This document shows, piece after piece, positions 7,663 to 35,693 of a stretch of 64,000 bases of DNA; position 1 is the stretch's first letter; each line of letters begins with the position of its first letter. Source of the stretch: Bispira polyomma. Its lineage: Eukaryota. Location of the stretch: NCBI GenBank assembly GCA_965649765.1, contig OZ287754.1, positions 36,828,001-36,892,000 on the forward strand, written 5' to 3'. The notes beneath the pieces were generated by a model. It was not told where the DNA came from and searched no databases. It was given only the letters and a program-made list of their open reading frames with translations. Both the position numbers and the translations under genes were made by a program.

Positions 7663-10600
7663 ATGAAGCTACATCAGTATGTTTGGAATCATTGTGTAAT
7701 CTGTGTTTATTATTTTATGTTGTGTGATGGACTACTTCAGCACAAAACAGAGACACAGTGTCTCTGGAGTAAAGAGGATTCTAACCCTGACAATACTCCA
7801 CCTCAAACAAAGGTGTCCCTAAGCTGTTTGGGCAATGTAGATGCTATCATCCACTTATTATAGACGTCTGTGACAATACATGTTTGACTGCCAGTGACTC
7901 GACAAAACAGAGTATTAATTCATCGTGTTGGGCAAGACTGGTGCTTATTGACTACTTATGTGTACAAGAGTGTAAGTGGTCTGGCTTTTTTTGTTTTTGT
8001 TTTGTTATCAGTAAAATAGAAATACTTTAGACACATGTAAAATGCCACTTTCAATGAATGTCACACCTTTTCGGTTTACTGCTAATTGAAAATCCTTCCG
8101 TATCTGCTCCACTTCTGAATGTTTTAAACTGTGTAAAACATCCGTTGCAAAAGCCAAACCATAGCCTGTTTACTCCTAAATGGATGCTTCACCAATCGTG
8201 CACCAATACAACATGAGGTACTGCTTTAATTGCATTTCCATTTTTATGAAATGAAGAACCCCATTTATGACGATATAGTCACATAGATGGACGATTAATA
8301 AATGATATGCGACGTCTTATAATATTTTGAGCTATTCCCAATAACCCCAAAGTGTCTTGTAGAGCCATAATGCTTTCCTGGTGTTAATAATTGGACAAGG
8401 CAGTGTTTGTTTATTAGTTCTAAGAACGTGCCATACATTTCCATATCTTTCCATAAGATTATATGACATAATTTTCGATGTTCAGACCAAAATTACCACA
8501 TTTGCCAACAATTTAAAATACCAAATTAAACTGTTGATGTATTCGCATGGTTATGATCATGCATGTAGGTGTGACCCAGGCATAAGTACAAAAAGCCTTT
8601 GTGTGATGTATTTTGATATTTTACTGAAAAAGCAAATCAGGTTTAAGCAGTTAGACTTTAGTTTAGTCTAATGCAAGGTTATGATTATACTGTAATAGAT
8701 ACTTAGGTCAAAGTGAACCCATGTAAATCTAGAATGCTGTATGACATTGTGAAGTAAATCAGTGAGCACTAAAGTGTCATATAATTATCTAAGAACTTTG
8801 GAAAGCTATTTGTTTGGTTGGAAAATGGATAGTTTATAAAACTAATACTTTAGTGGGTTTGTCAATAATGCCTTAGTTAATTGATTTACTCTACAGTTTA
8901 GAATTGATACTACATAAAGACAGAAACTGATGGTTTTATGCCATAAGTGACATGGGAATTGGCTGACATAAACTCTTTGAACTTTTGATCTTTATCTAAT
9001 CATCTAGAATTGCCCAAATGGTAGCACAGAACTAAAGTGACATTAAGTATGGACTATTTATATGTCATCAAGTGCTAATATAGAAGCCATGAGGTGAATT
9101 CTTAATATTCTATTCTTTATGTGTACCATTTTAGCATGTGACTTGAATGGTGCAATAACTACAACAGCGACAAAAGCAACAATGCCAATTACAGATGGCA
9201 ACTTTGGAGAAACTAATCCAAGTAAGATTCTAAGCTAACTATAAAGATTTATTGCACCTGATACTTACAGAGAAACATTTTATGGGGCAACTATTTGGAA
9301 AGAGTTATTTAAAAACCTGCATATATCAATGTGTCTGCTTCAATATTGTGGCAGACTAAAATTCTTAAGTTAACAAAACTTTAAGTCACATTTCAGTTTG
9401 AATTTTGAAGTTTGTTGGGTTTTACGTCCATTTACGACAGGCAACGTTTTACACAATGGCTAGTTTCCATGGTAAAAGAGACCAGGGCTCAAGCACAAAA
9501 AACCCATAGGCCTACGGCAAGTTTTTGACAAAGTTTTCCACATGAAGGAACGAATGGGATTCAAATCAACATTGCTGAGAGGCCAGTGAATGTGATTGCA
9601 CTTCTAAACACTAGGTCATCATGCCTCAAATTGATATGTACATCAAATAATGCCAAATGATTCTTTTGATTATAAAACATAACACATGACATTTCTCATG
9701 TTAGGAAGCATGGATTTACGTATTTAAGAATACTTTTGTTAGCTTAATAAGTTATTAACCTGGAAGTAAATTGATGATGGAAATTACTAATGGTCAATAT
9801 TACTGAATTGCCGTTCATGCATTACATATGATAACATTCTGTAATTATATTCTAATTTTAATGATATTATATTTGCTCAAAGTTAGGTTAAAGTTGTTTT
9901 TGTTCATATCACTAATTATCTAGATAACCCCAGTTAAGAAGTAAAATAATTAATAACGCAGGATTTCTTTATAACAGATACGTCTACTGATGCTATTTGT
10001 GGTGCAGCAAATAACAGGAAATACCACATTGCATTAGGTGTGATAATACCTATCAGTTTGTTAGCAGGAGCATTTATAATGCTACTGGTCTCAAAGTGAG
10101 TATGTTTTTATTATATTGTATTATCATTAAAATACGAGACTTAATATTTATAATTTAAATACGGGGTAAAAATACAGGATTGAATATATCACAACTATGG
10201 CTGTGCGACCATCCTCAGATTTGAAATTTACTGTACTAAAACAACATTTCAACAGATGATTATTGGCCGTTTTATAACATTTGTTTGATATTTTACTGAA
10301 TGAATGTTTAAAGCAAATATAATATTTTTAATTTATGTTGTGTTAACTGATGTTTACAGGTTTTGTAAGCAGAGATTTTCTCCAGAGAAACCAACTACCT
10401 CAGAGGAAACAACCACAGAGAGTGATTCAAACCAGATATCAGGTCCAAACGACCAACGTCCCACGACAAACCAGTACGCACACATCAGGGAATCTGAAAT
10501 ACAACAGACTGGCTTCAGGGAGGGAGGTGAGCGTACTTTGACTGGCATCAGTGAAAAGTATGAATCTATAAAGTTCAGTGGAAACAGACCATGGGATGAA

Positions 10601-11242
10601 GATGGAACAACTAGGTCTGGTTACCAGAATATACCAACATTACAGACTGATATGTGGAAGGGGCAAGGGATAGAGGGTAAAAGAGGTAGGATTGGGTGTG
10701 AGGATGAAGTAGTAAAGACCCATGATGGAAACATGACCAAATATGAATCATTGAAGTTTGAAAACAAAAACCCCGGGTCAGTGGGAGAGATGGTATCATG
10801 CAGAAATAATGTCATGGAGAATACCAGTTGTAAAAGTAAACCTACAACACCATCAAAACCAAAAATAAAGACACTATGGAAGAATCATGGAAGAAGTGGA
10901 GCGAGCTCTGAGAATGAAGCATTTCGTGCCAGTTTGGCTAGTTTATCTGAGAGGTATGAACCTATAAACTTTAGTGAAAAACCAGGAAAGGAGAATGAAA
11001 CAGATGGACAAATGGAACACAGTATTGATCATAAGAGCCAAGTTAATGAACATATTTACCTTGGCAGAATGACCTCAAACTCCAGTACAGCTCAAGAAGG
11101 TCATTTGGGTACAAGTGGAACGATGAGTGGAACTGACTATTTGACTGTGCAGCACAATAGCATGATGGATGACGTGACTGATGAAGCCTATTACATGGAT
11201 ATGACTAAATGTGATACACATAATGATGAAATTGTTATATAA
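7663..11242 (+). pseudogene. SUEL-lectin-like type I membrane receptor, paralog 1 (exon 1 internally deleted and frameshifted)
   Basis: Exons 7663-7971, 9135-9221, 9978-10095 (TM) and 10360-11242, all GT-AG with phases 1/1/2 as in the paralogs. Exon 1 hits TAG at 7861, while the domain C-terminus (CWARLVLIDYLC) follows in another frame. The Tyr-motif-rich tail is intact. Confidence 0.8.
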
Positions 11243-11650
11243 CCTATAATGTTGAAGGTGCTGTAAAACCCAAAATGAAATACCACCTAATAACTGTTCA
11301 TTGTTATTCTGAGATCATGTCAGATTTTGTGTTTATCTCAGAAAGGTCAAATATAATTGCAACCCAAAATCTGTGACTGGTCATCAATGTTAATCAACAC
11401 TACCCATTAAAATGACAGATTGTAGTTATCCTGTGTCTGAAGCTGTACAAATAGAGGAAAATATAGTGTAAATGCTAGCTCGGCATGTAAAACAACAGTG
11501 CTGGTGTTTACATTATTACGGCACACTTTTGTGAAAAAGTATTTCCACTGTCTGTTGCACTTTTGCGAAAAGGGTGAAATTAACGTTTTGTAAATTTACT
11601 TTGTACAAGAAAAAATTCAACAAAAAATTCACAAACCTGGTGTCAAGAAA

Positions 11651-11770
11651 AGTTGCCTATTGTTGGACAGGGGTTGCCTATTGTTAAACAGGGGTTGCCT
11701 ATTGTTGAACAGGGGTTGCCTATTGTTGAACAGGGGTTGCCTATTGTTGAACAGGGGTTGCTTATTGTCG
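11651..11770. repeat. 21-bp minisatellite (gttgcctattgttgaacaggg), about 5.5 copies
   Basis: Direct tandem units visible. Confidence 0.9.
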
Positions 11771-13044
11771 GATGGGTCCCTATTTTCAGGTCTATTAAGT
11801 GAGTGTGTGCCTATTGTCTCAATTCGGGACAGCCCAGGCATTTTAAAGTTGTTTTGTGTTCGAATGGCAGTGTTGATTAAATTAGTAATATGTGATCCAG
11901 TAATAGGGTGCTTCTCTTTTGTCTTTTACCTCTCTCATTTCAATGTATAGGGCCTTTTAACTTTTGATAGAAACATCACCCTTTATTCTGTAAGGACACG
12001 GGGAGTTTAATTTTTAGGTCATATTGTAGATCTTCTGATTAACCGAGCGCTTACTGAAGGTTTTGGTCAGGTAGAAATAATGTATCGTTTTGTTGTCAAT
12101 CATAGGCTTTGCGCCAGATCATTGGCTGATTGTAAAATTAATTTTATCTTACTGTTCCATTTTGGTATTTTCCTACAAGTCACCCATATCCTTTTCTAAT
12201 CTGACCATTGCTGCCCTTACCACTGAATTTACACAGGCCCTGTTGCTCAACAAAGCTTTGGGGACAACGATCTTTTCAATACATTTATTCCTTGTTTAAA
12301 TAATAATTCAATCATATTTTTCAGCAATATGGGAAATAACAGTCCCTAAAATAAGAATCCCGCTGTATCCTTTTGTTTTAATAACAATCAGTTCAGCATA
12401 TATGTCTTTTAAAGGACTATGTAACATACAAGCTTTATACCGAAGAAGTAACTTGGTTATCTATAGTCCTTTGAAAACCAGTTCAGAAATGTTTGCTCCA
12501 GGATATAGAGATAACCCCTGTCATACAGGCATACACATGTTCAGTCCAGGTGTTACCCACAATAACATTCACGCCCATGAAACACGACTCGAATGATAAC
12601 TCCATTAACCTAAACATTTCATTAACCATTATCTTATATACTAAGTTGGCTATGAGGTGTGAATGACACTTGGATGTTGAAGTCCGCATGAAAATATAGA
12701 TGTGACCTTGTTTCGGATAGATCTGACACTTAAAGTCAGGCTCTGAGGTTTGTTATAGTGGGGCCAGGATTAATGTTGACATCTCCAAGTAAAATATTAA
12801 GGATGAGGCTAATCTAGAAATCACCAGGTCGTTCCATAACTACAGTATGTGGTCCATTTCTATACCTCCCCCAAGGCACTAACATGCCAACCCGTGAAAT
12901 ATCCTGGATCTCTCCTTCTTTGATCTAACCCAAAATTAAATGGATTCCCCCTTGGCCCAAGCCAAAGTGCATGTAAACTGGTTCAGTTTGGTTTGTGCAA
13001 TCTTCGTGAAAACATTCCCTCGGTGGAGGTATCAATATCTATAT

Positions 13045-13150
13045 TTTGGCTTAGTGCGGTTCTAATGGGCCTCCACAGTGCTTCTGTACAACATCTCAAA
13101 CAGCATGGTTACTGGAGAAATGATGCCATATCACACTATCTCTCTCCTCC
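13045..13150 (+). mobile_element. Relic tyrosine-recombinase C-terminus
   Basis: Translation LKQHGYWRNDAISHYL resembles the YR HGxWxSxA...Y motif seen at 957-1142. Confidence 0.4.
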
Positions 13151-13806
13151 ACTACTCAAACAGCCAGTGAACTTCCAGAAGCATTAAAATATACAGAATA
13201 TAGAGCTTCATTTGGGTTTAGTGGTTTTATGTGTAATACAGTCCCGAAATTGATATATGCATGAGAATGTTATAAGTAGTACTAGCTATAGGAAATACAG
13301 CTTCGCCTCAAATACCTTCAAATGATTATTAGACACTTATATGCGGTTATACTGGAAAGTAATATAACCTCTTAGTATATATTAATGTATTACAGGTACA
13401 AAGAGTGTATGTATGAAGGCACACAGAAGTATAATATGTTATTGTAAAGCAACTTGTTAAATATATATATAAATCCCACTAAAATGGAATAGACTACGTC
13501 TGTTTGTATTGTGTTTTGTATTCTACCCGTCCTTCCAACTGTAAATAGAGGAAGTAAAAGATTTAAGTAAACAATACAGTTATTATATACCACAGTGTAC
13601 ACTAGAAAGTGTATACCTATTAGTCCATATATATAGTATATGGGCAAACTTCGTGCCACAGTATTATTTTGACTGTACATACATGTGACTGTACATACAT
13701 GTAGCGTAACGTATGGATATATTAACAACCTTCTTAAAAAAACCTAATTGCACAAGTTGACTTTAAATTTAAAAGCTGGTTTATTTATTCAACTTTCGCC
13801 TCATAC

Positions 13807-16800
13807 ATGATGATGGTTATGATTGTTGATGCCATTTTGGTTTTGTTCATGCTATATGGTATGGTTAGATGTCCTACTCTTCAGTACAAGACCAACACTT
13901 CTTGTTTGTGGAAGCAAAGGTATGAAGTACCCTACTTGACTCCTCCCACGACTGACATCACTCTGGATTGCTCAGGATATGATGGCTCGGTGATCTACAT
14001 CTTGAGTGCCTACTATATCCGACCAAGTTGGAATGGGGACGTGCAGTGTGTCAATAAGAGCTTGCCTGATACCTGCTGCCAGGGAGGTTTTTGGTATAAC
14101 AGTACAAACCACAGGTGCTTAGTGTCCATTCAAGGAATGGTCAAGAAAACTATCGAGGCAGAGTGCAATAACAGAACCACTTGCTCTCCACTCCTTGAAG
14201 CGGTTCAGTTGAATACTAACTGCTTAAATTGTGTCTTTGCTAATGCAACATCAACAGTTAATATCACTGAATGGTGCTTTGCCAGATTAGTAGAGATCTC
14301 GTACATTTGTATACAGCAAGGTATGTCATGTACTATTTATCCTCAGTAATCTGTACTATTAGTAAGAAGTGAAGATTTATTTTGTCAATTTTATTATTAT
14401 TTATAGATTTTGTGCAATGTATAGCTGCATAGCTATCGTATTTACCATTGTACAGATTTTTTTATTACGATAAATACACCTTACCTTATCCTCACTAATG
14501 CTTTAAGTTAGTACACCCAAAAATTCGACCAAAAAATCACTTATGTCTTTTTTTCTAAGACTATTCTTGTGATTTTGATTTTTAAATTTCCCGCCAAACC
14601 TCACTGCGCATGTCCCTGCGTATGTCTCAATGCCAAGTCTCATCCTCGAGAAACCCTTCACAATTAATTTGGTCGCCGTGTTGTCAACACCTTATTCGTT
14701 TTGTTGGAAGTGTTTGTGTGTAGTTATGGTGGAGAAAGTTGTTTCTTCAAAAGCTGTTAAACGGAGAACGGCCCCGAAGTGTGGTCATAGAGTTTTTGAC
14801 TTCGATTTACATCGTTACTGTCTTCCGTGTCGAGAGAAGTGTTTGGGAGATGATCTTTGTGTGGTAGGACAAGCCAACTATTGCTATGTGTGCTTTACTA
14901 TAACAGAAGAGCAGAGTAAGAGATTGAATAGTGCTGCCAAGCTTAGAAGGCGAGAGAAAGGGCGAGAGGAGCGACCTTTAACAGAGGTCATTCCTGCCCT
15001 AACTCCTCAGATCTCAACGCCACCAGGTATGGAGTCGACTCTTCTGGCTCAACTCACCACCATTTCGGATTGACTAACTAAAGTCGAGTCCGGGAATGTG
15101 TCTGGTGCAACGTCTGTACAGAGTAAGGAAGGTGAATTTTCGCCCCATATTTCAGTTGTATCTGCTACTAAGAAGAGGCCAAGGGCTGAATCTCCACAGG
15201 CTATGGATGTGGACAAAGATAAAGGTGAGGATATTGAAGAAGATGATCCTAGCTATAGACAGTTATTGGCTATGGTATGTCAAATTTTAGATCTAGAAGC
15301 ACCTTCTGAATCTCAAGATCAGCCTGCAAAGATTTTTGGTAGTGGTAAGTCAAAACGACCTAGCCTTTTACAGTTTGCCTCCTGTAGAGGAAATAGAGCA
15401 GAGATGGATACATTATGAGGCTTTGGCAGCTGGGAAGCCTGATGCGGATAAACCAGAAGTTTTGGGTTTTTGGGTTTTTAACCTGCAAGAGACCTAAGAT
15501 GAAATTTTACAAGTCTTCTAAGGAGTCTTTTGCTTTGTCAGCACCAAAATATCAAGATGCTTTCAAGGGACTGGCCAAATCTCAGAATTTGCCTACAACA
15601 TATTATTTGCCTGGTTGTCAGTTGGTGAATATGGAAACTGTTCTTAGAGAGAATGTCCAGATTTTTTCATTTGTAAGTCAATTTGTAAGGACTATGGAGA
15701 AGTCATTATCTGATGGAGCTGCTTGTTTGGGGGCCTTGGTGGAAAAGTTAGATACTAAAGATCAGAAAAAGGATATGAATGACTGTATTGTTCATTTACA
15801 AATTGTCCAATCATGCCTGTCATCTATGGACAAAGCTCTGGAGACTACAGTAGATTCCTCTATCGCTCTAGCCTGTAATCTACAGTTGGCTAGGAGAGAT
15901 AATATCTTCTAGTATAATGCACCTCATCTCACTGATCATGAGTCGAATAGAGTGAGAAGAACAGGATTTTGACCTTCAAGATTTATTTGCCCCAGGTACT
16001 TTGGATGATATTGAGAAGAAATTATCTAAGTCAAGATCACCCAAAAGAGCCAGATAGGATCCTGCTTATCACCAGAAGTCTGGTTATAAACCTTATTCTC
16101 AGTCAGCTCATCAGAGTGCTCCCCAGGCGAAAACGAGTTCTTACACAGGTGGTCACAATCAAAGCTACAGTTCCCATAAGTCTGGCTCATTCTCCTCCAG
16201 TTCTACAACTCGTGGAGGGAGAGGGCGTCGTAGGTGACGACTACAGCAGAGGACGACATGGAGGCCGCTTGCAAGATTATTGGCAGGTATGGGAGCGGTT
16301 AAAATGTCACCCTCGAGTTGTGCTGATTCTGAAGCAGGGCTAGTGAATAGTCTTGCGTTTGAGAATCCCGTTAGCGAGATTACTCACAATTCCCAGAGGA
16401 TATGCAAACAAGGAAAAGGAACTAGCTTTAAAAAATGTGTATTGCTAATGCTAGAAAAAGGCGCAATAGTTCCTGTTTCAGACAGCGCAACGCAAGGGAT
16501 TTTACAGTCGTTTGTTTCTAGTTCCGAAACCAAACAAAAAATGGCGCCCTTTGATAGATCTAAGCTTTCTAAACAAGAATTTGTATGTTCCGACCTTCAA
16601 AATGGAAACGGCAGAGGTTATTCGAAACGCTCTGAAACAGGGGGAATGGGTAGTATCTCTAGACCTAACAGATGCGTACTTTCATGTCCCTATACATCAA
16701 AACTCACAGAAACTGCTTCGATTCAATGTCGGAAATCAGACTTACCAGTTTCGGGCTCTTCCGTTTGGAATAGCAACAGCCCCACTCGAGTTTACCCGAA

Positions 16801-19800
16801 TTGCCAGGGAAACGAAATTAGTACTGCAATCACATGGTATCCGAGTACATCAGTACATAGACGACTGGCTAGTTCGTTCAGTATCTCAACAAGAAAGTCA
16901 AATTCAGATACAACAGATGATTCAAATAGTAGAGTCTATGAGTTGGGTGATCAATTACACAAAATCAGAACTCGAACCGACTCAGGAGATCGATTTCCTC
17001 GGTCACCACTTCAATTTGGCCAGAGGTTTGGTATTTCCAACCCAGAAGAAGTGGAAAACGCTTACAGAATCGGTCGTGAAGTTTCAGAAAGCTCAGGTCA
17101 TCACTGTAAGAGAACTAATGTCCTTGATAGGGGTTATGGGCTCTTTAGAAAAGATTGTCCCCTTTGGCAGGCTACATATGAGACCACTCCAGTGGTATCT
17201 AAGAACCCATTGGCGAGTTCCACTATCAATAGAGATGCTGATTCCTGTGTCACACAGGTTAAAGAATCAGCTGATCTGGTGGTCGGATCCCCAGAATGTC
17301 ATGGTCGGGGACGAAATGCATATTTTAGAGCACAGCATTCAAATCTTCACAGATGCTTGCAACACAGGTTGGGGAGCTCATCTAGGAGATTCGGTAAAAA
17401 TTGGTGTTTGGCTAGATTCAGAAAAATATTTCCATGTCAATGTTCTATAGCTAAAAGCTGTTTTTCTAGCCTTAAGGGTGTTTGCAGATCAAATTCAGGG
17501 CAAACGGGTACTTATAGCCACCAACAACATGTCTGTAGTCACTGAACAAACAGGGCGGAACCAGATCGCTAGAAATGTGTCTGTTAGTCTGGAGGATCAT
17601 GGCCTTTGCAATCCTCGCAGAATCAGAATTCGAGCCCGTCACATAGCAGGTTGTCTGAATGTGCTAGCCGACAGCCTCTCCAGGCGGGACAAGGTGATAC
17701 AAACAGAGTGGTCATTACATCCTCAAATGTTCAGGCTACTGTGTCAAAAGCTTTACCAACCACTGGTAGAGTTGTTTGCAACCAGTCAAAACCACAAACT
17801 ACCTCTGTATGTATCACTAATCCCAGATGTCCAAGCACTAGCCATAGATGCATTGAACATCTCTTGGGAGGGTCTGGACGGTTATGCCTTTTGTCCAGTG
17901 GCCTTAATTCCAAAATTAGTTAAAAAAATGTTGAGGTTTCAGTGTCGAATGATGGTCTTAACCCCAGAGTGGCCAGGGATGACTTGGTTTTGGATTCTAG
18001 TAGACCTATCAGTGAGGCCACCATTACAAATACCTCAGTGGCTTCATCTGTTGAAACAACCATTCAGTCTGAAATACCACCAGCATTTTCAGTTTCTGAA
18101 TCTCCATGTTTGGATATTGAACTCAGATCTGACACAGCACTCAAATTCTCACGATCTGTGGAAGATCGAATTAAGGCACCTCAGAGACAGTCCTCAAGAC
18201 GTGTCTATGAATCAAGGTGGTCCCTTTTTGAACAATGGGCAAATGAGAACCAGGTGGTCTGCACAAAGCCTACTATCCCTCAAATAGCTGATTTCTTGTT
18301 ATTTTTGTTTCAAGAAAAAAATCTTAAACCTGCAACTTTGGCTGGATACCGTACAGCTATTGCAGATCATATGGGTACCTTTTGTCCAGAAGTCTCAAAA
18401 AGTCATGATTTGAATAGACTTTTGGCAAATTTTTAAAGGAATAAGCCAATTAAAGATAGAGGCATACCTACTTGGAATTTGTCTGTAGTACTTCTTGCCC
18501 TCACGAAACTTTCGTTTGAGCCTTTAAAGGAGGCTTCTCTAGGGATTTTGACCTTCAAAACTGTATTTTTGATGGCTCGGGCATCAGGTAAAAGGAGGGG
18601 AAAGATTCATGCATGGACTTTTTCATCTCTCAAACATAAGCCAGGATGGACTGAATTGACTGTAGCTCCTCCTCCTGTCTTTTTGGCTAAGAATCAGTTA
18701 GCCTCAGTTGGACCTGATTCTATAAAACCTGTGATCATTCCACCCCCAAGACCATTTCTGGATGAGTCACTTACTGAAGATATCACTTTGTGTCCAGTTA
18801 GAGCTTTACGCTTCTACATAGATAGGACTAAAGGTTTCAGAAAAAGAAAGAATCTAATGTTCATTTCTTTTAGAGAGACTTTTCCTAGTGATACTAAGAG
18901 GGCTACAATATCTTCTTGGATTCAACAGACAATTTTGTTAGGCTATAAGTCGGCAGATCAAGAAATAGCTTCTCTTTGTCAGATTAAGGCTCATGATCTT
19001 AGAGCTATGGCTGCATCACTCGCATTTAAGGGAAGAGTTTCTCTTGACCAGATTTTAGGTTCATGTTATTGGACTTCACATAACACCTTCACTCACTTTT
19101 ACCTGAAAGACATAGCTTGGCAGGCTAAAGAGGACTCTCAGTTTACTCTAGGACCTGTTGTTTCGGCTCAACACATAGTCAAGCTTGATTGAGTTTTGAG
19201 AAGGTATTAAAATGTTTGGTGACATTTTTGAGTGAATTTGTCTGGTATATAGTAATAACAGTATCACAAGTTGTTATTAGTATACTTATGTTGTTCATCT
19301 CTTATGAGTGATTTTGCTGATGACATGTTCTTGTTGTCTCATTACAGGGACTTCCATGATGTGTATATAGGAAATTTTGTATGCAGCTTGGAGAAGTGAT
19401 GTCTTTCTTATGACAGCGACAGCTTGAGAGTGAATGACATCACCTTGCCGACCATGTTTTGATGTTCATTTGAATGTTTGTACAGAAGCAAATTGTACAT
19501 AGAAGTTTCATTGTATACTGGACAGATCTACTACCTATGTTTTAAGGTAGGATGCTGTTTGATTTACTTACTTGCTTCGTCTGAAGTGTATTGAGTAGGT
19601 TACTTACTTTATCCTCAATGCTAATGCTTGATACATCAATGTTAAATTTCCTTAGGGGAGGTTTCTTATTTCAAAAAATAACCCTCCACCTTGAAGGTTG
19701 GATTCAAGCATTAGTGAGGATAAGGTAAGGTGTATTTATCGTAATAAAATGTAAAAATTTTATTATAATTTATCTTTTTGGAAGATAAATACTTACCTTA

Positions 19801-22131
19801 TCCTCACTAAGTCAGATCCCACCCAGCCTACCCCACTCTTAATTTTTGAAATACTGTGAAGGGTTTTGAAATTTTGTGAAGGGTTTCTCGAGGACGAAAT
19901 TTGGCATTGGGACATGCGCAGGGACATGCACAGTGAGGTTTGGCGGGAAATTTAAAAATCAAAATCACAAGAAATATCTTCCAAATAGATAAATTACAAT
20001 AAAATATTTACAATTTCAGTCCTATTTCAGTGATACATCTGTTCTGCCAAAGATTAAATGATATGCCATATTTCTTGAACTAAGTGTTCAGACAAAGCTA
20101 ATTTTTAATTGCATGAATATTTTCCACAAATAAGTCATTCTTAACATTTAATCAGATTTCAATATTTCAAATAGATGCTTTTCCTTATAAGTACAAAGTA
20201 TACTAATCCTTCATTTGCCATATCAGTATGTTAGGTGTTATTTTTCCTTAATGGTAATCACTAAAACAAGTTTTCTTTTGTGGATGTTAGATGAATTTGT
20301 AAAAATAATACTTGTAGTATGTCAAGACTGTGACCTCTCACCGGATGATCAAAGTTCAGAAAGTGGCAAGATAGCTTTAATTGTATTCTTTATTCAAAGC
20401 AATTATATAGCACCTTATTGGTGACAATACAATATCTAAGGCAAGAAGAGATAGTCCTGCGCCACAGTACTTCCAGGAAATAAGTGTATTCACATATTAA
20501 GTAAGAAATTTTACCAACCAATGACAGCTGTGACATTAGTGTGAGTTAAATCTTCGATTATCAACCAAAATCCCTAACCTTTTCAACTATGCAATTAATA
20601 TGAAATAAAGTGACAGCATAACTATGTAAATAATAGAAAATAAAGCTACAGTATAACTATGCAATTAACATAGAATAAAACTACAATATAAGTTTGCATT
20701 ACGTATGTAAGTAAACTGCAGTATAAGTATACAATAGCTGTGCCCTAATGCTATCATATAAATATGCCATTATTGCAAACAAAAATTGGTGAACCATAGA
20801 ATGGTATGTTTACACATTACAATTATTGGGTTTACATTGACATTGTTAAATGTAATAATTCTTGCAGGGAGCCAGCCATCTTCAGATGGGATCAGCTATA
20901 AAATTGGCTTAGCTGTTGCTGTTCCAATAGCCTTGATAATTGGATCACTAGTCACAGTGTTGATATTGAGGTAAGGTTCAGAGAATTATTGCTTTTTTTT
21001 CTGTTTGCAATGTTTATGATGATGTTTCTATTACAAATGGTAAAACTTCTAAAAGAATGATTTAATTAGTTTTCAAGTTACTTTTGAAGAATATTTAAAC
21101 ACAATTCTGTAATTAGCTTGACAAAGCGATGCCACATTGAATTTGGCATATGAATACATAACACTGAACTGTAAGAGTACCACTAAACCCTTATGCTGTG
21201 AACTACATTCAAGATGGCCGCGCCATGTTCCGTGAATTACAGAATTTTTTGTGTTTCTAGTAAATAATTAAATTACTAATGATATCAATTGGTAGAGTAC
21301 CACTAAACCCTTATGCTGTGAACTACATTCAAGATGGCCGCGCCATGTTCCGTGAATTACAGAATTTTTTGTGTTTCTAGTAAATAATTAAATTACTAAT
21401 GATATCAATTGGTATTTTAATAGTACTGTTTTTTTTGTAACTACATGATATTTATACACTCAAGGATTTAACCAGTGCCATTGCTAATGATGTAAATTGG
21501 TATTTTTATTCTATTTCTCATATAACTTGGCTTGGATCACTAGGATTGTGGTAACTGGTTGTAATAGCTTGTTTACTTAGAATCATTAATGAAAAAAGTA
21601 AAATTTGTAAGTTGTAAAATAACCGAAGCAAATTCAGATGAAATTTTTAAATACACTTTAAATATCAAATACAAGTTGTATACAAAGCTTTTTGTGAAAA
21701 ATGTCTATCTGCAAGTATATATTTTTGTATCTTATAGAATTTATAATTGCTGAAATAAATCTACAAGAGAAAAGGCGAGTGTAGAAAGAGCAAATCCCGA
21801 AGGCATGATGTCGCCGGAAGTCAAAAAGGCAGAAAATAATTTGAGTTTTCACCAGGACCAAGGAAAGGTGTATGGCATGGTAGAAAATGCTAATTATGCA
21901 GGCAACAGTCTTCCTGCTAAAGATGGTGAAACCTTTGAAGAAAATCCTTACTATGATGGTTTGGATGAAATGAATGAAGCAAAGGCAAATAGTGGACCAA
22001 GTGATACGGGAAAGAAAGGTGTTGGCGAAGAACCAGGAAGGGTCAAGAAGAAAGATACAACAGGGAATTATGTGTATACTTATGGTCATTTTAGATTAGA
22101 AGGAAGATCAAGAGAACCAGAAACTTCTTAG
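13807..22131 (+). CDS. SUEL-lectin-like type I membrane receptor, paralog 2 (in-frame TGA just after the TM gives a ~226-aa tail-less product or a pseudogene)
   Basis: Exons 13807-14320 (signal peptide and Cys-rich domain: LDC...VIYILSAYYIRP...CNNRTTCS...LVEISYIC), 20318-20365 (GC donor, tentative), 20868-20970 (TM) and 21738-22131. TGA at 21751-21753 is in frame with tail ORF 21805-22131. Confidence 0.75.
14726..16237 (+). pseudogene. DIRS gag-like ORF1 (disrupted)
   Basis: N-terminal Cys/His cluster (CGH...H.YCLPCREKC...C...CYVC) and the NLQLARRD motif; broken by stops and frameshifts. Confidence 0.75.
16238..18287 (+). pseudogene. DIRS RT-RNase H-methyltransferase ORF (disrupted)
   Basis: RT: FLVPKP..WRPLIDL, LDLTDAYFHVP, ALPFG, YIDDWL. 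RH: FTDAC..GWG, HIAG.LNVLADSLSR. MT-like: ELFA...N.KLPLY...DAL..SW...YAFCP. Confidence 0.92.
18100..19192 (+). pseudogene. DIRS tyrosine recombinase (one in-frame stop at 18434-18436)
   Basis: Core-binding region (YESRW..F..W, YRTAI), then ASGKRR, LCPVRALRFY, HDLR, W.S..TF..FY. Confidence 0.9.
21174..21413. repeat. Perfect 120-bp tandem duplication in intron 3 of paralog 2
   Basis: agagtaccactaaaccc...gatatcaattggt occurs twice in succession. Confidence 0.9.
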
Positions 22132-22520: not shown

Positions 22521-22610
22521 CTGTGCTAATGTTCTAATATTGCTGTGATAATGTTCTAATATTGCTGTGATAATGTTCTAGTATTGCTGTGCTAATGTTC
22601 TAGTATTGCT
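22521..22610. repeat. 22-bp minisatellite (ctgtgmtaatgttctartattg), 4 copies
   Basis: Direct tandem units visible. Confidence 0.85.
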
Positions 22611-23702: not shown

Positions 23703-24483
23703 TGTTATGGTCAAGGGAGCAAGCGAGGTAGCAATTACCGATTGCTTTTAGGTTGTAACAGGAAAAGACAAAAAGTTTCACTTAACAAATTTATTAACAA
23801 ATAAAATAACAATTACAGAATTACAGAATTACAGTCAACTGAGATACTCATAATGGTTCATACAATAATGCAATAATGAAACCGATCTGACCTGACCACA
23901 GTCCTATCCACATAAATAACAATAAACAAGTTTGTCCACTGTATCCAGCAATCTGTCTTGAGATCTGCTCGGTGTCCACACAATGTCTGTATCCTGTTAT
24001 CCGTTCGGTGTCCACAAACACAAAATGTATATATCCAGAGATTCTGCACAACTAAGCTATCCAGTCCATTATGCAAACAATATCCAATATGCAGTAAATC
24101 CAATCTCTGGTAGATCCACAACTTTTATCTAGTTCACTCCAATGAGTTCACCACAAAAACATATATAGTAATCAGTTTATATCCACAGGAAAAGAAATAA
24201 AATGTTTCACAGTATAGCAGTTCGTATAGCACACCAACTTAATAAACTCTACTCTGTGGCCAGGCTGTCAACCCTTATATATACCACTGCTAGAGGAGGT
24301 TGCTAGAATATGTAAGCAATTGCTAGAACGTTCCAGATTAAAAATGTAAACAGACCAACACAACTTCAATAACAACAGAAACAAAATAGACCCAGCTTCT
24401 AGAAGCTTAGGGGTTCCCCAAATCTATAAATAGATCACTCTAGTAGAGTGCTTTAACATACCACTTTGTCCTTATATGTAACA
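23703..24483 (-). mobile_element. Solo LTR (Gypsy-like)
   Basis: TGTTA...TAACA termini and a 4-bp TSD ATAC (23699-23702 and 24484-24487). TATA-like and AATAAA motifs fit the minus orientation. Confidence 0.8.
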
Positions 24484-25945: not shown

Positions 25946-28900
25946 ATGAATATATTAAATTATCTGTTAATAGTGATTGTTATATGGGCACATCATAGCA
26001 ATATTATATGCAGCAATAATCTGGAACATAGGTCATTCATATACTGTTTGTGGACAAAGGAGCCTTCAAATGATCAGGGTGGTGTCATTCCTCTCACATT
26101 AAACTGTTCCAATAAGCCTGGCAGTGTTATCCACATAGTGAAGGCTCAATATATTGTAAAACACATAGGTGAAACAGAACACTGCAAAGAACAGTTAACA
26201 TTGGATCATATTCTTGAAGATGACCGGGCATATGGCTGGACAGCTGATTTATCATACAACATGGATGTGCTTGAGAAATTGGTTTTACAATGTGATAACA
26301 AAAGTGTTTGTTCACTGGAATTGAAAAGACACTATTTCGACCTGAAAGAGTCACCCACTTGTGATTTTCAGTCGTGTCAACCAGAGGCATCAGGTGGCAT
26401 GGTGTGGACAGGATATGTGAACATTGACTACCTTTGTCTTTCCAAATGTAAGTGATTGCAATGCTATCGTATCCACTAGAGCATGTGTCTGCTAATATTA
26501 TAGTGTAAGATTAAACTGTAACGATAACCAAAGAATTCATGAAATATACCACAACAGAAAGCAACTTAAATAGGTGTATCACAGTTCTAAGTTTGGGTAT
26601 TTGTATTACATCAAAAACAATACCCTATAGTGTATTGTTGTAGTTTTAATTGATGATCAAACTTTACCCAAATTAAATTTTCGCCACTAAAGTTAACTTC
26701 TTGTCAACGTATATGGTCATGAATGGGTTAATAATTATGTCTTATATAAAAACATATCCTATATATGTTAGTTTATCAATCACAGGTCCAAGTTGTGAAG
26801 GCCACAGCATAACCTCCAACACAACTGACGTCTCACAGGATGACGTGATACAAGATGACGTCACAAGTTGTGGTGAGAGATTTAAATCTGTTAGGTCATT
26901 ATGTACCAAAAAAAAAACCCATTACGATTCAAGATACATTTGAACTCTGAGACTTGGTATATTTGTAAAGCATTTGTTATTAAAATTTGATAACAAAAAT
27001 GGCTATAAATAGCAGGTTGGTGTGTTTGTGGATAACATATGACACATCTTTAAAGTGTATATGACTTAAAGGTCGGCAGTAATGCTGTGGTCACGCTGGG
27101 CTTAAGTTTTGATTACACACAAAAAACGTAAGGTAAAACGTAATAAAACGTAAGCAGAACGTAGTGTACTTAAGTAAAGTAAGCATGCATGAGTAAGATG
27201 GTCCCTTGATGTCCGGTTTTTTTTTAAAGGTAAAAAATTTTCGACCTGCTCGAAATTACTTTGTGGCCATTTTCCTGAAAAGGTTGGTGCATGTACTCAA
27301 TGGCAGGGATAGCAGCATAACAAACTATACATCCAAATAATAACTAGAAACGAGGAGAACAAGAACGAAAGAGGTTTAGAAATGTGGAAACGGATTTTAA
27401 AGCAGGGCTAATGACACAAACATAATTGAAACGGCTATTAAAAACGTGCGAAATGCGTGTACAAACGTGTACAGAACATGATATTTTGCTACATTTCCCC
27501 GATTTTCACTTTGTTTTACTATCGTTTTGTTATGGTCTGGTCACACCTACACATGTTAACGTCCCTCAACGTACCCAAGCAATATTCAATGAAAACGTGG
27601 TAGTTTCGTGTCAAAGTAACGTCATTTCAATAAAGGAGTAGTCGATTGTGACATTTTGTAACGTTTCATGATGATGTTGGTACTTATACGCACGGAGCAG
27701 GGCAAAAAACGGGCCCTTTACTGGTAGGATATCACTACCTACTACTATGTAGAGCTACTGTAGTGCTACTTACTGGTGCGTTCTGCTGTGTTCTGCTACC
27801 TAGTAAAACAAGTGGAGACAATACGACTACTAACTGGGACTTCCTCGCTACCTACTACTAAGTAGAGCTACTTACTGATACGTCTATGCTACTTTCGGAA
27901 ACGTTCAAGGATGCACAGTGAAACTGGGAGAAACGGGAGCAGTGACTGTAGTGCAAAGTAACTAGAAATGTGAACGATGTAGATGAAGCGAATGCAACCT
28001 ATTTAAAATGAGGAGAACAAGGTCGAAACATGTTTAGAAACGTGGCAAACTTATTTAAAATGTGGCTAACATATTTTAAAATGTGGCTAATGCTACAAAC
28101 ATAATTGAAATGACTATTAAAACGTGTTGAATGTATGTACAAACGTGTACAGAACGTGTACAAAACGGCCCACACATTTATTTTTTGTTACATTTCCCGA
28201 ATTTCAATTCGTTTATTTCTGTTTGCTTACATTTAAAATGAAGCAAGCGTAAACATGAACATGCTCAGTGTGACCACCGCATAAAATACTGAAAAATCTT
28301 ACAACAGCTCAAAACAGCTGTGCCTTTATTATCAATCTACATTTAAAAAGTGAGCATAATATTTAGTTAGTATAAGAACTCAATGTAATTATATTTTGTC
28401 AAACGTTAAAATCAATGTTAATTTATTTCTGATGACTGAAGACAGTGAGACCAGCACACAAGACAACCCAGAAACTGGTGACAAGATCATTTTAGCCATT
28501 GCTGTGCCCAGTAGTTTCCTTGTTGGCTGTTTGACTATGTTCTTGTGTGTGAAGTATGTGGTATAGTATCAGCTGAGTCATACTGAACGCTAGGTATAAC
28601 AGAAGATGTATATGAGCAGAAGTGTCAAAGTTGAGCGCTGGTTTTGTATTATTTTGATATCTTAGTGGCATGAAATGCAATTCAATCAAATATTTTTAAA
28701 CAATCCTTACAAATTGTATCTATTGTTTTAAAGATTATAACGCGCCATTAATTTGTCATTTTATTTATTTTATCCCAGGTTTTTTAATAGTGTTCAATGA
28801 ATTTTGTCTAATATTATATTTGCAATATACATAACAATATTTATTGAGAATATAGATGCTAGGTATTATCATGCATACGTTTTTGTAGATTATGCAGACC

Positions 28901-29738
28901 AAAGCGAACTGATACTGTGAGATATAGGACTCAGATAATAGATTCCAAAGGATGCAATGTACCTATCAATAAGCAGGTGGCATTACAAGGCCAATACGAT
29001 GACGTCGAAGAATCAAAAATGAATGTAGAGGTTGAAGAGAAAGCTACACCACGCAAAAGGGCAATGGTGAGAGAAACATATGAATCAGTGATGATAAACA
29101 TCTCTGAAACTTCAAGTGGAGTCAATGGTCTGACAACATCCAGTGGTAAAGAGGTTAAAACTTCAATAAATAGAAGTCTGACATGTGTGTCAAGTGAAGG
29201 GCATAGCAATGATGTTGTGACCAAGACAAATATTGACCAGAAGGATGCTTTGGATGGTAATACTATGGTTGATGAAAATGCTTACCTTGTACTGCAAAAC
29301 GAAGAAGCTGCAGAGAAAGATTGTAAGATGGTTGAAAACAGTTACTACTCCACGGTTGATACTATTACACCTCACAAGAAGTATCATGGGCCAGAGATTG
29401 TTAACGAATCCATGCAGTCTTTAGAAAGAACAAGTAGTGATGAAGCATATGTTAGTGGATCAGTGAAACTGTGTGGTGAAGGAAGTCATCTTGATACCTA
29501 TGTTAATGAATCTGTGCAGCATGTTGGTAAAGCAGTCCACACCACTCATACTAATGATTCTAAGCAGTCTGATGGGATAACAGATGATATTAGGCAAGCT
29601 GTTGAAAAACCCAGCATTAAGGATGCAGGAACGAGCCACCTGCAATCTCGTGCAGCAGACTCTGTGCAGTCGGCCAAGGCACATGTCAGAGACAACTGTT
29701 ATGAACATGTAGAAACTTACGATGAAACAAACTTTTGA
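25946..29738 (+). CDS. SUEL-lectin-like type I membrane receptor, paralog 3 (intact, ~516 aa, Tyr-motif-rich tail)
   Basis: Exons 25946-26447, 26786-26872, 28442-28553 (TM IILAIAVPSSFLVGCLTMFLCV) and 28889-29738 join in frame (1551 nt). Domain: LNC...VIHIVKAQY...CDNKSVCS...YVNIDYLC. Tail: YDDV, YESV, YLVL, SYYSTV, YVN, YEHV. Confidence 0.85.
27083..28281. mobile_element. Non-autonomous PIF/Harbinger-like element in intron 2 of paralog 3
   Basis: TIRs TGCTGTGGTCACGCTGGGC / GCTCAGTGTGACCACCGCA flanked by TAA on both sides; internal duplications. Confidence 0.75.
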
Positions 29739-31656
29739 AATTTGCATCCACGGGGCACCAAGTCTACTGATAAACAAGGAAAGAATAAGACAATAAAAGA
29801 CAGTGTAAACCCTATTAACTCTAACCCCCAACAATTTATATATGGATTATAAATGTATTACTATTGTTCTACAATGATAAATAGTATATTTTTAAGTGTT
29901 TTGTCATTTGTTTCCTGTAGAGCTAGATGTGTAGAATTAAAAAATAAAGAAGACGCATTTGGCATATTGTTAGCACTGTTTTGGCTAAGTTTATTTTAGT
30001 CAAAAATAACAAAATATACTACAACATTACAATTATGTCATTTAACAACAATTAGTTTTATCATTCTATCCTAAATATTTCACTTTTTTTAAATAGAGCT
30101 TTATAATATTTCACATCATAATGGTTCATATTTTAAATATTCTTTTCATTTCTGTCTTGATAAATAAATGTAATATTTAGTACTACTATAATCTTTGACT
30201 CGGGTGTTACAATGTACTGTGCTATCTGTAAGGTTGCACAAAGTAAACATATTTTTTTATAAGGCACATAACTGTTTGATCATTTAGTCTACTGGGTTGG
30301 ATATGCAAATATTGCCAATATTTAGAATGCTATGTCAAGCCTTTATTCTCTTTATTATAAGATTAACTAGAAACTCCTGGTGAACCCAGTGTGTAAAACG
30401 GTTAAACTAAAGATAATCTAATAACATTTCCAACTTGATAAAGAGTGTTGCCGTTTTAATTTCACAAACCCAATTTTGCCAAATAGTGGGATATATTTGT
30501 AACAAGATCAAAAATGGGATATATTTGTAACAAGATCAAAAATGTCTTATATTGTATCAATATAGTCCCCCTTAAGATATTTTTTAAACCCTACAAGCCT
30601 AGCTAAAATCAGACAGTAATAGACTTCAGTCAACAGTTGTTAAAAAAATGTATTAGTAGAACTACATTGTAAAAACAAGCCCATATTAATACTATAATAA
30701 CACAACCATACTAAGACCTAGAAAACTATCTTGCCTCCAAGCATATCGAATATACTGAGTTGTAAACAGCGCTTAATATGTGCTAGCTATGTGAATAATT
30801 CCCTATCTCCTATTAAGAGATATATCCCTCAAGGAAGTATTTCTAATAAACCATTTATGATTCCACAACGGGAAGTAATCCTTTTTCTTATAAGTAGCAG
30901 GTATTTGTCAATAAGAATAACCCCTCCCATACACATGCCTGTTGAATTCTGTTAGGGCAGAAGTGTTGTAGGATGCAGACTATGCAAGGACCATTATGTC
31001 ATACAATCCAAATGTCACATGTTACTGTACTGATACCGCACAGTAAAGGTTACAACTCATATTATTTGTAACTGGAATTTAGTTTTGTTCTGTTGATGTA
31101 CTGGGATACTACAAAAAACTGGTCTATTTGGATACGTTAAAGGCTCTAGTTTGATATACCTCTATACCTTCTCAGTTTTTTTTTTATTATTTGCATAATA
31201 TTTTTTATAGACAATGCCACAACTGTTTTGTCATATAGTGGTGACTCAGAAAAGACATTGTTGAATAAAACCGGGTATTTACCTTCTGCCGTTATATTAG
31301 CTCTGCACTGAACTATGAAGATACTCAGTATAGGAGGCAACATCGTATAAGGGAAACGGAGTTTGAGAAATATTGTGAATCATTTTAGAATTTTTGAGAA
31401 AAAACACTGGAATAAACTAATATTACAATGTTTGTTGGGACACAATTCTTACTATTCAAGCTTATTATGCAAAGGGACTTGTGGTAGGTCTGTGGTTTAC
31501 AGTGCTTCAGCACCTGTTCCACCATTGGATTTGAAAACAACGTGAAACACAACTAAATATTAGCCAAAAAAGCACAATTGAAATTTATAGTGAAAAAAGC
31601 TAAACACTACACTGTTGACTGAAGCTAGGGCTAGTTTAATAGCCTCAATTTCAAAG

Positions 31657-34600
31657 ATGAGGACAACCACAATCTCAGTGTTATTTCTCTGTATATTTAG
31701 TCATCTTTCCACATATCATATACAAAAGGAGACATATTGGCTGTGTTTTGATATCTTTGTTACCAGTCCTGAAGCCATGAATGCCACACTACTGTGTTCA
31801 GATGGCTACATGGAAATCATAGACATTCAATATGTACGTCCCCTTCAAGTGGGTGACAGTGTATGTACAAATAGAACTTATAACTATCTGGAATGCTGCC
31901 AAACATGGAGGGCAGACCATGTGCAATGCATTGTACAGCAAGACTGGTCGATGTTAAAAGAAAACTGTGAACATCAGAGTGAATGCAGCATTTCACTGGA
32001 GCCCCTGAATATGTATGCAGAGTGTGAAGCGTCATGTTCTGACAACAGCACTGATCCTGTTTGCTGGAGTAGAGGTGTACAAATCACTTATGTGTGTTAT
32101 AGCATAGATTTAGGTATGTCTATATTGATCATCTAATGGGTTTACTTTTAGTTTGGATTTAACGCCACTTTTAACATGTTTTTGTTTCATATCGGGACAG
32201 ACAGGTCACTGGTGGAGGAAATAGGAATAGGATGGTTGGTCAAGGTTTTGCTCTGTAGTTTTATCATTTAAGTTTTTTTTATCAAGTATTTCTTGTACAA
32301 CAGTTCAATTGGAAACATTCATAATATTGAAAGGTGTGACAGTAACATTAAGCAATACCAATTTGTAAAACATTGAACCAGCATATTAGTCTGGACGAAG
32401 TAATGTTAAACTGGTGCGCAATCAAATCTATTAATTGGATACCTTTATAAATAAACTTTCTTTTAATGGTATATCCATTGATTCTGCTCTACACTTGATG
32501 TGTTTTAGATTAGTTCGGGATTAACTTCCCTTTCAATATGCCATGTGTCATACCATGACAGAGTAGGGTGGATGGTCAAGCTTTTCTGCTCTCTAAACCA
32601 CCATCCTTCAGCCTACAGTGGATCTACCACCAACTTTCCCACATACATACCAGGGACAAGATACAAACCCATACAGCACAAATTTACTTTTATAGGGTTT
32701 TTAATGTAGAACACAATTCTACCATATCACACTGAGCCTATTATAATATTACATCTATATATAATACCTATAGATTGTGTGTATCAGATATAACCACACC
32801 AGGCACAGCAACAGAAGATACTGACCCAGATAGCACAGTACCTGCGAGTACCACCTCTGATACCACAGTACCCGAGAATAGAAGCCTTATACAGAATAAT
32901 TGTGAATGTTCTGCTGAGTTGAACAGGAGCTCCATACTGCAGAAACCTGAACTTATTACAATAGGTCAGTTAAAATGATGATAAATTCAAGAACAACCAA
33001 TTGGATATAATCAATTACACCCGATTCAAAGATTGTTGGTCAGTTCCAGTTATTTAATGAAGCCATGTACCACATGAATCTAAAATAGGTGTCAGGAAGC
33101 TTAGTATCATCTAATGTAAAAGTTGTTCATCATATTATGAAAGAGTGAAAGTGGTGACAAATAAAGTTTATAAAGGCCTTAAATAATACAAAATTCAATT
33201 CAAGTATGATGTTAGAAAACACTCTTTTACATTTTTCTTAAACAAGTGTATTTACATTTTTATGGTTACTTTTCATATGTAATTAGTGGTAACTCTGAAA
33301 AAGTTAATTCCTTCCCTTCAGAACTTGAATACGGTTTGTATTTTCTAAGGGTTGCAAATGGCTCATACAATAATCTGTGCATAGTAGCATGCATACTCCA
33401 CCAAGGCGCTTTCAGAGCCAAAAATAAATCCTGGATCTGCCCTTTTACCTGGATCTGTTCCATAATAGAGGGACTTCTTCCTTGGCCCATACCCGAGCCT
33501 TCCATGACATTCCATGTAAATTGGTTCACTAGTCCTGTGACAAACAAACCTATTGGATAGGGGTGAAAACAACCTCCTTGGTTTAATATTTTGACGGATT
33601 CACAAAGTCCTAGATATGACAGATTAGATTGTTATTATACCTGTGGCCCTGTTACAAATAACTGTTTAGTAAGTGGTAATACTACCGTGTGTCTAAACCC
33701 TAGGACAGTTTAGAAGATTGTATTGTGACTATAGCTGGTCAAATACCTATTTGGTGGATGTATTTTGATGATATTGATAGTAATTTTCTTGTAAGAAGTT
33801 ACAATGGTAAAACTTTAGCTATTTTCAATATAACGCCCACTTCGTATTGAGCCGAATCTGAATACACATATTTGTCAATTTAAATCAGACATTGTGTAAA
33901 TTTTAGATTCGGTTGAGAAATTTGTCTAGAAATTAGAAAAAAAGGATTGTGCATATTTTATATAGCCCAATATTTAGATCTGGTTTTCGATTAAGTTACA
34001 GTGAGAATGCTTAAAATACATCTCAACGGTATCCATATTTCCAGATTTGGCTGAATGTAAATCAGCCATTACACCATACAGCATCATACATAAACCTGGC
34101 CTTTCTCTGATATTTATACAGAATGGCTCACCATACTGGCTGCAGTCTCCTCCGTGTGTTTTGCTATTGGAGTGACCATTGGCTGGTCGTGTACCAGGTT
34201 AGTTATATTTTGTACTCTTTCTCTGAAGGCGCCTCAATGGAAAAGTGTTAACACATTTGCCTCACACCTCTGCTGTCATGGGTTCAAACCTCGGTCCTGT
34301 CATTTTGTTGCATAGTTTAGAGTAAATTTACTGAAGGTGGATGGTTTGCGGAGCAGAAAACCTTGACCAAGCGCCCTGTTGTTATTTCATCCACTGGTGA
34401 ACTGTGATAGAAGACAAGTTAAAAGTGACGGTAAACCGAAAATAAAGTCTTTCTCTGAAGACAAAGTCTTTCTCTAAAAACAAAGGCTTTCTCTGAGGAC
34501 AAAAGGATTCCAACTTTCATTTGACAGAGGTGCATCTAAAAATCCAACCAAAGAAAGGATTTTGTTTATTAGATTTGGTTCTTAATCCACTCATTATATG

Positions 34601-35693
34601 CACAAAATGTCTTGTGTATTTTGTTCACAGTAAAACTCCTTCAAGTAGAACTCTATTAAATCCTTCAGCTTTTATGTGGAGAAACATGTGTTGTCCTACA
34701 CTGGTCTTTTTCTTTGCAATCTACCCTGTTAAATGAAAATCCTGCTTAAGTAATACTATTTCTCCTGATCCCTCGAGCATAGACTCAAAAGGGGGCGTTC
34801 GAACTGTATTTCACATTTGCTGGCAGGTAAGCTTTCATAGAGCAACCGATCCCATTGCAAGGGTGTTTATGGTATGGTACTAATCATTTTTATGACAAAA
34901 ATTATCATTCTGTAACAAATTTAATGTAAGTTTTGTTTGTGAATTTGTTATCTAATCATTTCTATGTGCAATCTAGTAGTGCAACTACATACTAGTACAT
35001 GTATATACAAATATGGATCATAATCATCTGTACAGCTGTACAGTTCTTACTAGTGTAACTACATCCTAGTACATGTATAAGCAAATATGAATCATAATCA
35101 TCTGCACAGGTCTTACTAGTGTAACTACATCCTAGTACATGTAAAACCAAATATGGATCATAATCATCTGCACAGTTCTTACTAGTGTAACTATATCCTA
35201 GTACATGTATATCCAAAATTATGGATCATAATCATCTGCACAGTTCTTACTCATTTCTCACTGAGTTGGTACATGCTTGTAGGACTTTTATCATGTTTAT
35301 ACTTGACGTGTGTCTGTTGAACATTTATGTTTTTAATTTTATTTCTAAACTGTATTTGGTAGGTTACATTTGTACTGTGAGAAGCATAGGGGAATGGATA
35401 AAAACCTGACAGAAACACAAGAGGTTTTTGTGGTGGAAGAAGTAAATACAAGCAAAGATATAGAAGTTGGAGAGGAGAAACAACATTGCAATACAGTTGA
35501 AAATGACGAAAATGGAACAGTTACTACCTTAGATGATACTAGTATTTTGCATGAGGGAAGGGACACCCAGGAATACAACTTTGAGGGGGAAAATAACGGC
35601 ACAGAAATGTCAACTGAAGACAGTTCACAAGATGCTATTGTAACCGGAAGTTTAACTGAAGCTACTGCAAATACACACAATGTCTGTTCATAA
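31657..35693 (+). CDS. SUEL-lectin-like type I membrane receptor, paralog 4 (intact, ~346 aa, acidic tail lacking YxxPhi motifs)
   Basis: Exons 31657-32113, 32788-32964 (S/T-rich stalk), 34122-34197 (TM) and 35363-35693 join in frame (1041 nt). Domain: LLCSDGYMEIIDIQYVRP...ECCQ...CEHQSECS...CWSRGVQITYVC. Confidence 0.83.
34228..34446 (+). mobile_element. tRNA-derived SINE (Meta/V-SINE-like), decayed
   Basis: tRNA-like head with a GGTTCAAACC B-box and a tail ending aaaagtgacggtaaac. Related inverted fragments lie near 9410-9625, 32150-32250 and 32505-32670. Confidence 0.55.
34972..35250. repeat. ~60-bp tandem repeat in intron 3 of paralog 4
   Basis: ctagtgtaactacatcctagtacatgtat...atatggatcataatcatctgcacagttctta, about 4.5 copies. 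Confidence 0.85.

Follow-up and report, generated by a model that had tools for sequence, protein, structure and literature searches.

An array of single-pass receptor genes with remodelled rhamnose-binding-lectin heads in Bispira polyomma

The 64,000-nucleotide stretch of the Bispira polyomma genome analysed here (the window; C7:36828001-36892000, free of N, in an intron-containing genome of 1.035 Gb) carries a row of surface-receptor genes, one copy of which (gene 1) is broken and another (gene 2) probably damaged. The head exons of the four genes all lie on the + strand and begin at positions 7663, 13807, 25946, and 31657. We are highly confident that these genes specify a receptor architecture built on a remodelled rhamnose-binding lectin (RBL) fold that has lost canonical sugar binding. 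The wider reading, in which they are old, lineage-restricted type I receptors whose RBL/SUEL head was remodelled for a protein ligand and which act in self/non-self or pathogen recognition, has in our view about an even chance of being correct as a whole. Similarity searches were made exon by exon, with joined exons translated just for a check of the frame; exon junctions are predictions and signal peptides were called by hydropathy only.

A first-pass annotation of the window, made from the letters alone, had proposed a SUEL-type lectin fold for the products of the head exons. Four methods agree on this fold: a family profile searched against the PDB, the Atlas features, which indicate SUEL, and VIA structural comparisons of the gene 2 model and of the gene 3 model. 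The heads do not reach the Pfam PF02140 gathering cut-off of 31.4 bits, as gene 3 scored 15.4 bits, genes 2 and 4 gave no match, and the best family member had an E-value of 0.0012, below the cut-off. All seven PDB matches of the family profile were RBL proteins. For the AlphaFold models of gene 2 (predicted local distance difference test, pLDDT, 79) and gene 3 (pLDDT 77), the top eight VIA matches were all RBL-fold chains, with Z scores of 5.0-6.6 (gene 2; next fold 4.0) and 7.1-9.0 (gene 3; next fold 4.8). Foldseek on its own gave a best E-value of 0.006. Latrophilin domains in complex with teneurin and TOL-1 are among the best structural matches. A word-index protein search, which sees only proteins of similar length, found none in that length class that matched the head alignment.

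The head domain spans ~135-145 residues and has 12 conserved cysteines versus eight in RBLs. The eight RBL positions (C1-C3, C2-C8, C4-C7, C5-C6) are matched by alignment in most members, and four cysteines are new, which could form two extra disulfide pairs; P0017 has lost both the C4 and the C7 equivalent, and gene 3 lacks the C4 equivalent. An alignment of the family heads bears out both the cysteine scaffold and the altered YGR, DPC, and KYL motifs recognized earlier, with Y-[ILVM]-R-P in place of YGR, R-[LV]-V in place of KYL, and no DPC. In the latrophilin RBL domain, Glu42, Tyr63, Gly117, and Lys120 contact the sugar, and the substitutions E42D, E42Q, and K120R reduce or abolish sugar binding (PMC2430599). 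The Glu42 position, at +1 from the first cysteine, is Phe, Leu, or Tyr in all 33 aligned members and Glu in none, while the Lys120 position in loop 2 is Arg in 32 of 33 and never Lys. Of the 33 members, 32 have cysteine at the Gly117 position, and 32 retain the buried structural Arg65. Because Arg65 persists while Glu and Lys have gone throughout, the family keeps structural residues and drops sugar residues, and these three positions make the loss of the rhamnose site firmer than the motif changes alone had made it. An unlikely alternative is that the heads are still lectins with a site rebuilt for another glycan, serving as pattern-recognition or symbiont-binding receptors. Tyr63 is retained as Tyr or Phe in 30 of 33 members, invariant-like GD and W residues lie near the old site, and secreted RBLs bind lipopolysaccharide (PMC10817417); however, no member has either the Glu or the Lys that monosaccharide binding requires, and the Gly117 position has been taken over by a cysteine.

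The four genes had been described as sharing one plan, in which a head exon is followed by stalk, transmembrane (TM), and tail exons. The predicted junctions are GT-AG with intron phases of 1, 1, and 2 in that order, and genes 3 and 4 give stop-free four-exon models of 516 and 346 amino acids, both with phases 1, 1, and 2. In gene 3, exon 1 (25946-26447, +) encodes an outlier head that lacks four of the 12 cysteines and both conserved arginines yet models as an RBL fold. It is followed by a stalk exon (26786-26872, +; phase 1-1, predicted junctions), a TM exon (28442-28553, +; phase 1-2), and a tail exon (28889-29738, +) of ~282 amino acids with 11 tyrosines and five YxxΦ motifs. Exon 1 of gene 4 (31657-32113, +) encodes a 12-Cys head of the other subfamily and precedes a Thr/Ser-rich stalk exon with a CxC pair (32788-32964, +), a TM exon (34122-34197, +; phase 1-2), and an acidic tail exon of 109 amino acids (35363-35693, +). 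The gene 4 head has an orthologue in another sample at 56% identity, with a ratio of nonsynonymous to synonymous substitution rates (dN/dS) of 0.16, and a stalk exon resembling that of gene 4 also follows the orthologue's head. The DPVC of gene 4 had been taken for a displaced DPC motif, and we reject this identification: its cysteine aligns with Gly117, and there is no DP in the orthologue. The single plan is upheld by the head exons, the phases, and the open models of genes 3 and 4, but not by gene 1, which is broken, nor by gene 2, in which no stalk exon was found.

Gene 1 begins with a signal-peptide-like start and both ends of an RBL-fold head (exon 1, 7663-7971, +), and both halves match family members. 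This exon is 309 nt versus the usual ~510 nt, so that ~68 codons are gone; it is frameshifted, with a TAG at 7861-7863 after which reading resumes in a different frame. The head has lost six cysteines along with the Y-x-R motif, the CC pair, and the helix. We ruled out an intron that would rescue the exon, as the missing motifs occur nowhere in 6000-13700. The downstream exons are good and remain open over 363 codons: a Thr-rich stalk (exon 2, 9135-9221, +; phase 1-1, predicted junctions), a TM helix (exon 3, 9978-10095, +; phase 1-2), and a tail of 293 amino acids (exon 4, 10360-11242, +). This state marks either a recent pseudogene or a null allele, unless it stems from an assembly error.

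In gene 2, exon 1 (13807-14320, +) encodes a signal-peptide-like start and an intact 12-Cys RBL-fold head. Its first intron holds a ~5.5-kb retrotransposon (14460-19994, +) with split inverted terminal repeats, a reverse transcriptase, and interrupted frames, which we take from the layout of such elements to be DIRS-like. No stalk exon was found between the head and TM exons, and candidates at 20020 and 20031 were excluded by in-frame stops; the counterpart in another species has a stalk exon, and the DIRS-like element may have displaced that of gene 2. The TM exon (20868-20970, +) is 63% identical to the counterpart TM exon in ENA sample ERZ22147071, and the tail exon (21738-22131, +) contains an NPYY motif and a family tail motif. 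The strongest tail acceptor, with an exon start at 21738, matches the other genes in preceding the juxtamembrane cysteine, and it leads to a TGA at 21751-21753, four codons into the exon. A weaker AAG acceptor 30 nt downstream (exon start 21768) yields a full gene 2 protein of 326 amino acids. The last intron of gene 2 also contains an exact duplication of ~120 nt (21170-21410).

A second species preserves this architecture. The head-stalk-TM-tail layout is conserved there, and in ERZ22147071 the counterparts of gene 2 and of a fifth cluster member, which lies ~6 kb upstream of the window, keep the order and phases of the head, TM, and tail exons. The last 82 residues of the gene 2 tail are 54% identical to those of its counterpart. 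The tail frames of the window genes, at 109-293 codons, are well beyond the local stop-rate expectation (P from 6e-4 to 2e-9). That the exons lie outside expressed genes, as chance frames or a wholly dead array, would suit the broken gene 1 and the doubtful gene 2; but genes 3 and 4 have open models with consistent phases, and the TM and tail exons are conserved in another species with dN/dS below 1, which leaves this explanation extremely improbable.

The tails themselves do not share a plan, contrary to what had been supposed. The four are mutually unrelated, and those of genes 1, 3, and 4 are unique, with no relatives elsewhere in the genome. Three are tyrosine-rich, and a motif scan of the gene 4 tail found no YxxΦ, NPxY, or immunoreceptor tyrosine-based inhibitory motif (ITIM). 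By motif matches alone, hexamers resembling ITIMs or the related switch motif (ITSM) occur in genes 1 and 3, and NPxY in gene 2; the gene 1 tail has three ITIM/ITSM-like hexamers along with three YE[SP][IL]xF repeats. No tail matched Pfam, and the FAM176 domain was hit by none of them. Related heads on unrelated tails suggest either tail replacement or very fast tail turnover. The gene 2 tail carries a conserved C-terminal motif, NYVYTYGHFxLEGRxREP (22066-22119, +), that is common to most C7 paralogues and to the other species. For 15 of the 16 matches to the family motif in this genome, spread over three contigs, a family head precedes the match by at most ~12 kb in the same orientation. A word search of proteins with the motif returned the query alone, the Atlas had no match for the tail, and the literature searched held nothing relevant on the motif or on clusters of SUEL-type receptors with tyrosine tails.

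Profile searches located ~25-30 family heads, broken ones included, on C1, C2, C5, C7, C8, C9, and C10. A full-library search gave 43 matches, ~35 of which show the 12-Cys pattern and seem to be gene calls of one exon; among 19 relatives looked up, none was a named or annotated family member. Beside these heads, PF02140 finds at least 150 ordinary matches in the genome, and SUEL domains are strongly expanded in this animal, with big arrays on C2 (98.7-98.9 Mb) and C4. In a tree from which P0010 was left out, its orthology being assigned by best-hit scores, genes 1-3 and the upstream gene cluster with three C7 41.8-Mb copies and other-species proteins (support 100/99), and gene 4 lies outside this clade. 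Among themselves the four window genes are 20-41% identical in protein and show no similarity in DNA, so they are old paralogues and a recent duplication inside the window is ruled out. Their counterparts in other species are 41-56% identical. Four loci hold broken or partial copies and the tree contains pairs specific to one species, both of which support the birth-and-death evolution proposed at the outset, and the cluster, initially counted as four genes, has four in the window and the fifth upstream.

The array also appears to have been split. In ERZ22147071, no more than 140 kb of a single strand holds, in the order listed, counterparts of the upstream gene, gene 2, and the C7:41917-kb gene, followed by a relative of the 41828/41869-kb genes. 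In B. polyomma the second half of the array is separated from the first by 4.9 Mb and runs on the other strand, the 41917-kb gene being the most distant. A single inversion with a breakpoint just past gene 4 would yield this arrangement, judging from five anchor genes, and either order could be ancestral. Exons of a phosphatidylserine decarboxylase (PF02666; ~51700-57500, −), with tandem repeats in the introns, may mark the far side of the breakpoint. The head at C7:41917303-41918356 is in two pieces ~0.6 kb apart and its counterpart P0012 is continuous, pointing to an insertion or a gained intron.

Selection was estimated by a pairwise counting method, with recent paralogues represented by six pairs, none inside the window. 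The earlier proposal of rapid diversification by positive selection, with dN/dS above 1 expected in exon 1, finds no support here: exon-wide values were 0.53-0.87 among the paralogue pairs, the loops were close to neutral, and the window paralogues are old and under purifying selection. The core of the head gave a dN/dS of 0.46 (0.35-0.61) and the two loops 0.95 and 0.99, and with cysteines removed the loop value was 1.12 (confidence interval 0.84-1.49), not distinguishable from neutral. From these values, the loops appear free to change after duplication and the core constrained. Cross-species dN/dS was 0.16 and 0.25, with dS near saturation, and this conservation tempers any reading of the family as rapidly evolving. 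These estimates also bear on a role as gamete- or species-recognition receptors diversifying between lineages. RBL domains were first isolated from eggs, and the loops vary freely among duplicates; but typical fertilisation proteins have high dN/dS between species, the opposite of the 0.16-0.25 found here, and many-copy arrays with signalling tails are atypical as well, so we hold this role to be very unlikely.

An immune role is plausible, and self/non-self or pathogen recognition is the single most likely function, a judgement we hold with middling confidence. Several findings weigh against it. No region tested had a dN/dS significantly above 1, cross-species pairs are under purifying selection with the loops included (0.12-0.27), and apparent one-to-one orthologues, 42-60% identical, exist for dispersed members; such selection and orthology suit conserved host ligands no less than immunity. 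None of the TM segments carries a charged residue for adaptor pairing, and short tyrosine motifs easily arise in disordered tails. A developmental or neural recognition function, in which the genes are expanded EVA-1- or latrophilin-like co-receptors for host proteins such as guidance cues or adhesion partners and signal through tyrosine tails, draws on the same purifying selection on orthologues and on the latrophilin complexes among the top structural matches, and membrane-bound RBL domains work in axon guidance and at synapses, often without the sugar residues (PMC2430599). Tandem arrays in which genes often decay or are duplicated in part, and in which related heads carry unrelated tails, argue against such a function, and the lack of a named annotated member among the relatives checked suggests a narrow lineage. 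We consider it possible but doubtful.

In the most probable mechanism, a glycosylated RBL-fold head would stand on a short stalk, and the new cysteine at the Gly117 position would link loop 2 with the CC pair in loop 1, closing the old sugar pocket. The two long disulfide-tied loops would form a binding surface for a protein ligand, whose binding would bring receptors together. Tail tyrosines would then become substrates of a Src-type kinase and would draw in SH2 or PTB proteins, with outputs differing by tail: phosphatase-type motifs in gene 1, NPxY and the family motif in gene 2, several YxxV/L docking sites in gene 3, and none in gene 4, which could be a decoy or adhesion form. We tentatively extend this to germ-line paired immune or allorecognition receptors of a lophotrochozoan-type animal, built on an RBL scaffold rather than immunoglobulin, leucine-rich repeat, or C-type lectin domains and combining variable two-loop heads with activating, inhibitory, and non-signalling tails. 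A protocadherin-like scheme, in which alternative head exons are spliced to a shared stalk-TM-tail set, is hinted at by a two-head gene of ERZ22147071, where partial duplication is the simpler explanation, and seems very improbable to us. At positions 5272-15318 of stretch L073 from contig ctg31146l of that sample, a single set of stalk, TM, and tail exons is preceded by two intact heads, both of which have a start and a phase-1 donor; no convincing TM exon separates the heads, which could be a partial duplicate or alternative first exons. Alternative first exons were discounted in the B. polyomma genome, where the sole tail-less head (C7:41908.7 kb) seems to own a stalk-like exon.

By sequence, the family is neither a functional rhamnose-binding lectin nor EVA-1, and it resembles EVA-1 and latrophilin in fold and probable ligand type. 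EVA-1 and C21orf63 (EVA1C) also combine an RBL ectodomain, one TM helix, and a cytoplasmic tail, have lost the Glu and Lys, and have a proposed protein ligand (PMC2430599). They contain two RBL domains, whereas the present heads consist of a single 12-Cys domain with long inserts and belong to 25-30 paralogues with tyrosine-rich tails; an EVA1C-like Atlas cluster carries the FAM176 domain, which no tail here matches, and each gene here has one head exon. Latrophilin (ADGRL) provides the closest solved fold (Z 6.4-9.0), shares with this family the buried Arg of the YGR motif, and uses the fold for protein-protein contacts, but its olfactomedin, GAIN, and seven-transmembrane domains are absent here, identity is 20-29%, and the present heads have two extra cysteine pairs. 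SUEL, CSL3, and SUL-I (PF02140) share the fold and, by alignment with most members, the eight core cysteine positions; they differ in that the present family has replaced YGR, DPC, KYL, and the binding residues, is membrane-bound, and scores below the cut-off. In the Atlas structure search, the gene 2 model came closest to a molluscan cluster of the C1q family (TM-score 0.60, root-mean-square deviation 2.0, 98 residues), and SUEL/C1q genes have been described in oyster (PMC6835236). Those are C1q-domain proteins and no C1q domain is present here; similar remodelled SUEL heads may occur on C1q proteins.

In layout, with no homology claimed, the locus is like Hydractinia Alr and the polymorphic transmembrane clusters GRC/PTC2 of Biomphalaria, both made up of divergent single-pass receptor genes. 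The Hydractinia Alr genes are linked to allorecognition. PTC2 has been linked to parasite resistance (PMC7494358). The tandem single-pass genes, divergent ectodomains, and gene turnover of PTC2/Alr-like clusters are all found here, but PTC2 and Alr are defined by allelic hypervariability and a phenotype link, and the likeness seen here is one of gene layout. In most invertebrate phyla little is known of self/non-self receptors, and Pfam thresholds miss this family. It offers defined candidates with a fixed scaffold, two variable loops, and an undescribed tail motif, together with natural variants in a tail without tyrosine motifs and a head minus four cysteines. It would also show clearly how a lectin fold can become a probable protein-binding module throughout a family; the weight of this is limited because non-lectin RBL receptors are already known and the function is predicted. 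To the family the window adds the second arm of the array, damage in two of four genes, and three unrelated tails.

Other elements lie between and beyond the receptor genes. An Ngaro-like retroelement of the tyrosine-recombinase type (517-5979, −), flanked by 230-nt direct repeats (517-746 and 5750-5979) that are 99% identical, separates the upstream family gene from gene 1. A palindromic minisatellite (6280-6556) and a 21-nt tandem repeat (11670-11770) lie on either side of gene 1, and a 36-nt tandem repeat occurs at 38020-38180. A long interspersed nuclear element with endonuclease and reverse-transcriptase-like frames occupies 40876-47574 (−), and its upstream frame (46225-47169) carries a full NADAR domain (E 5e-43).

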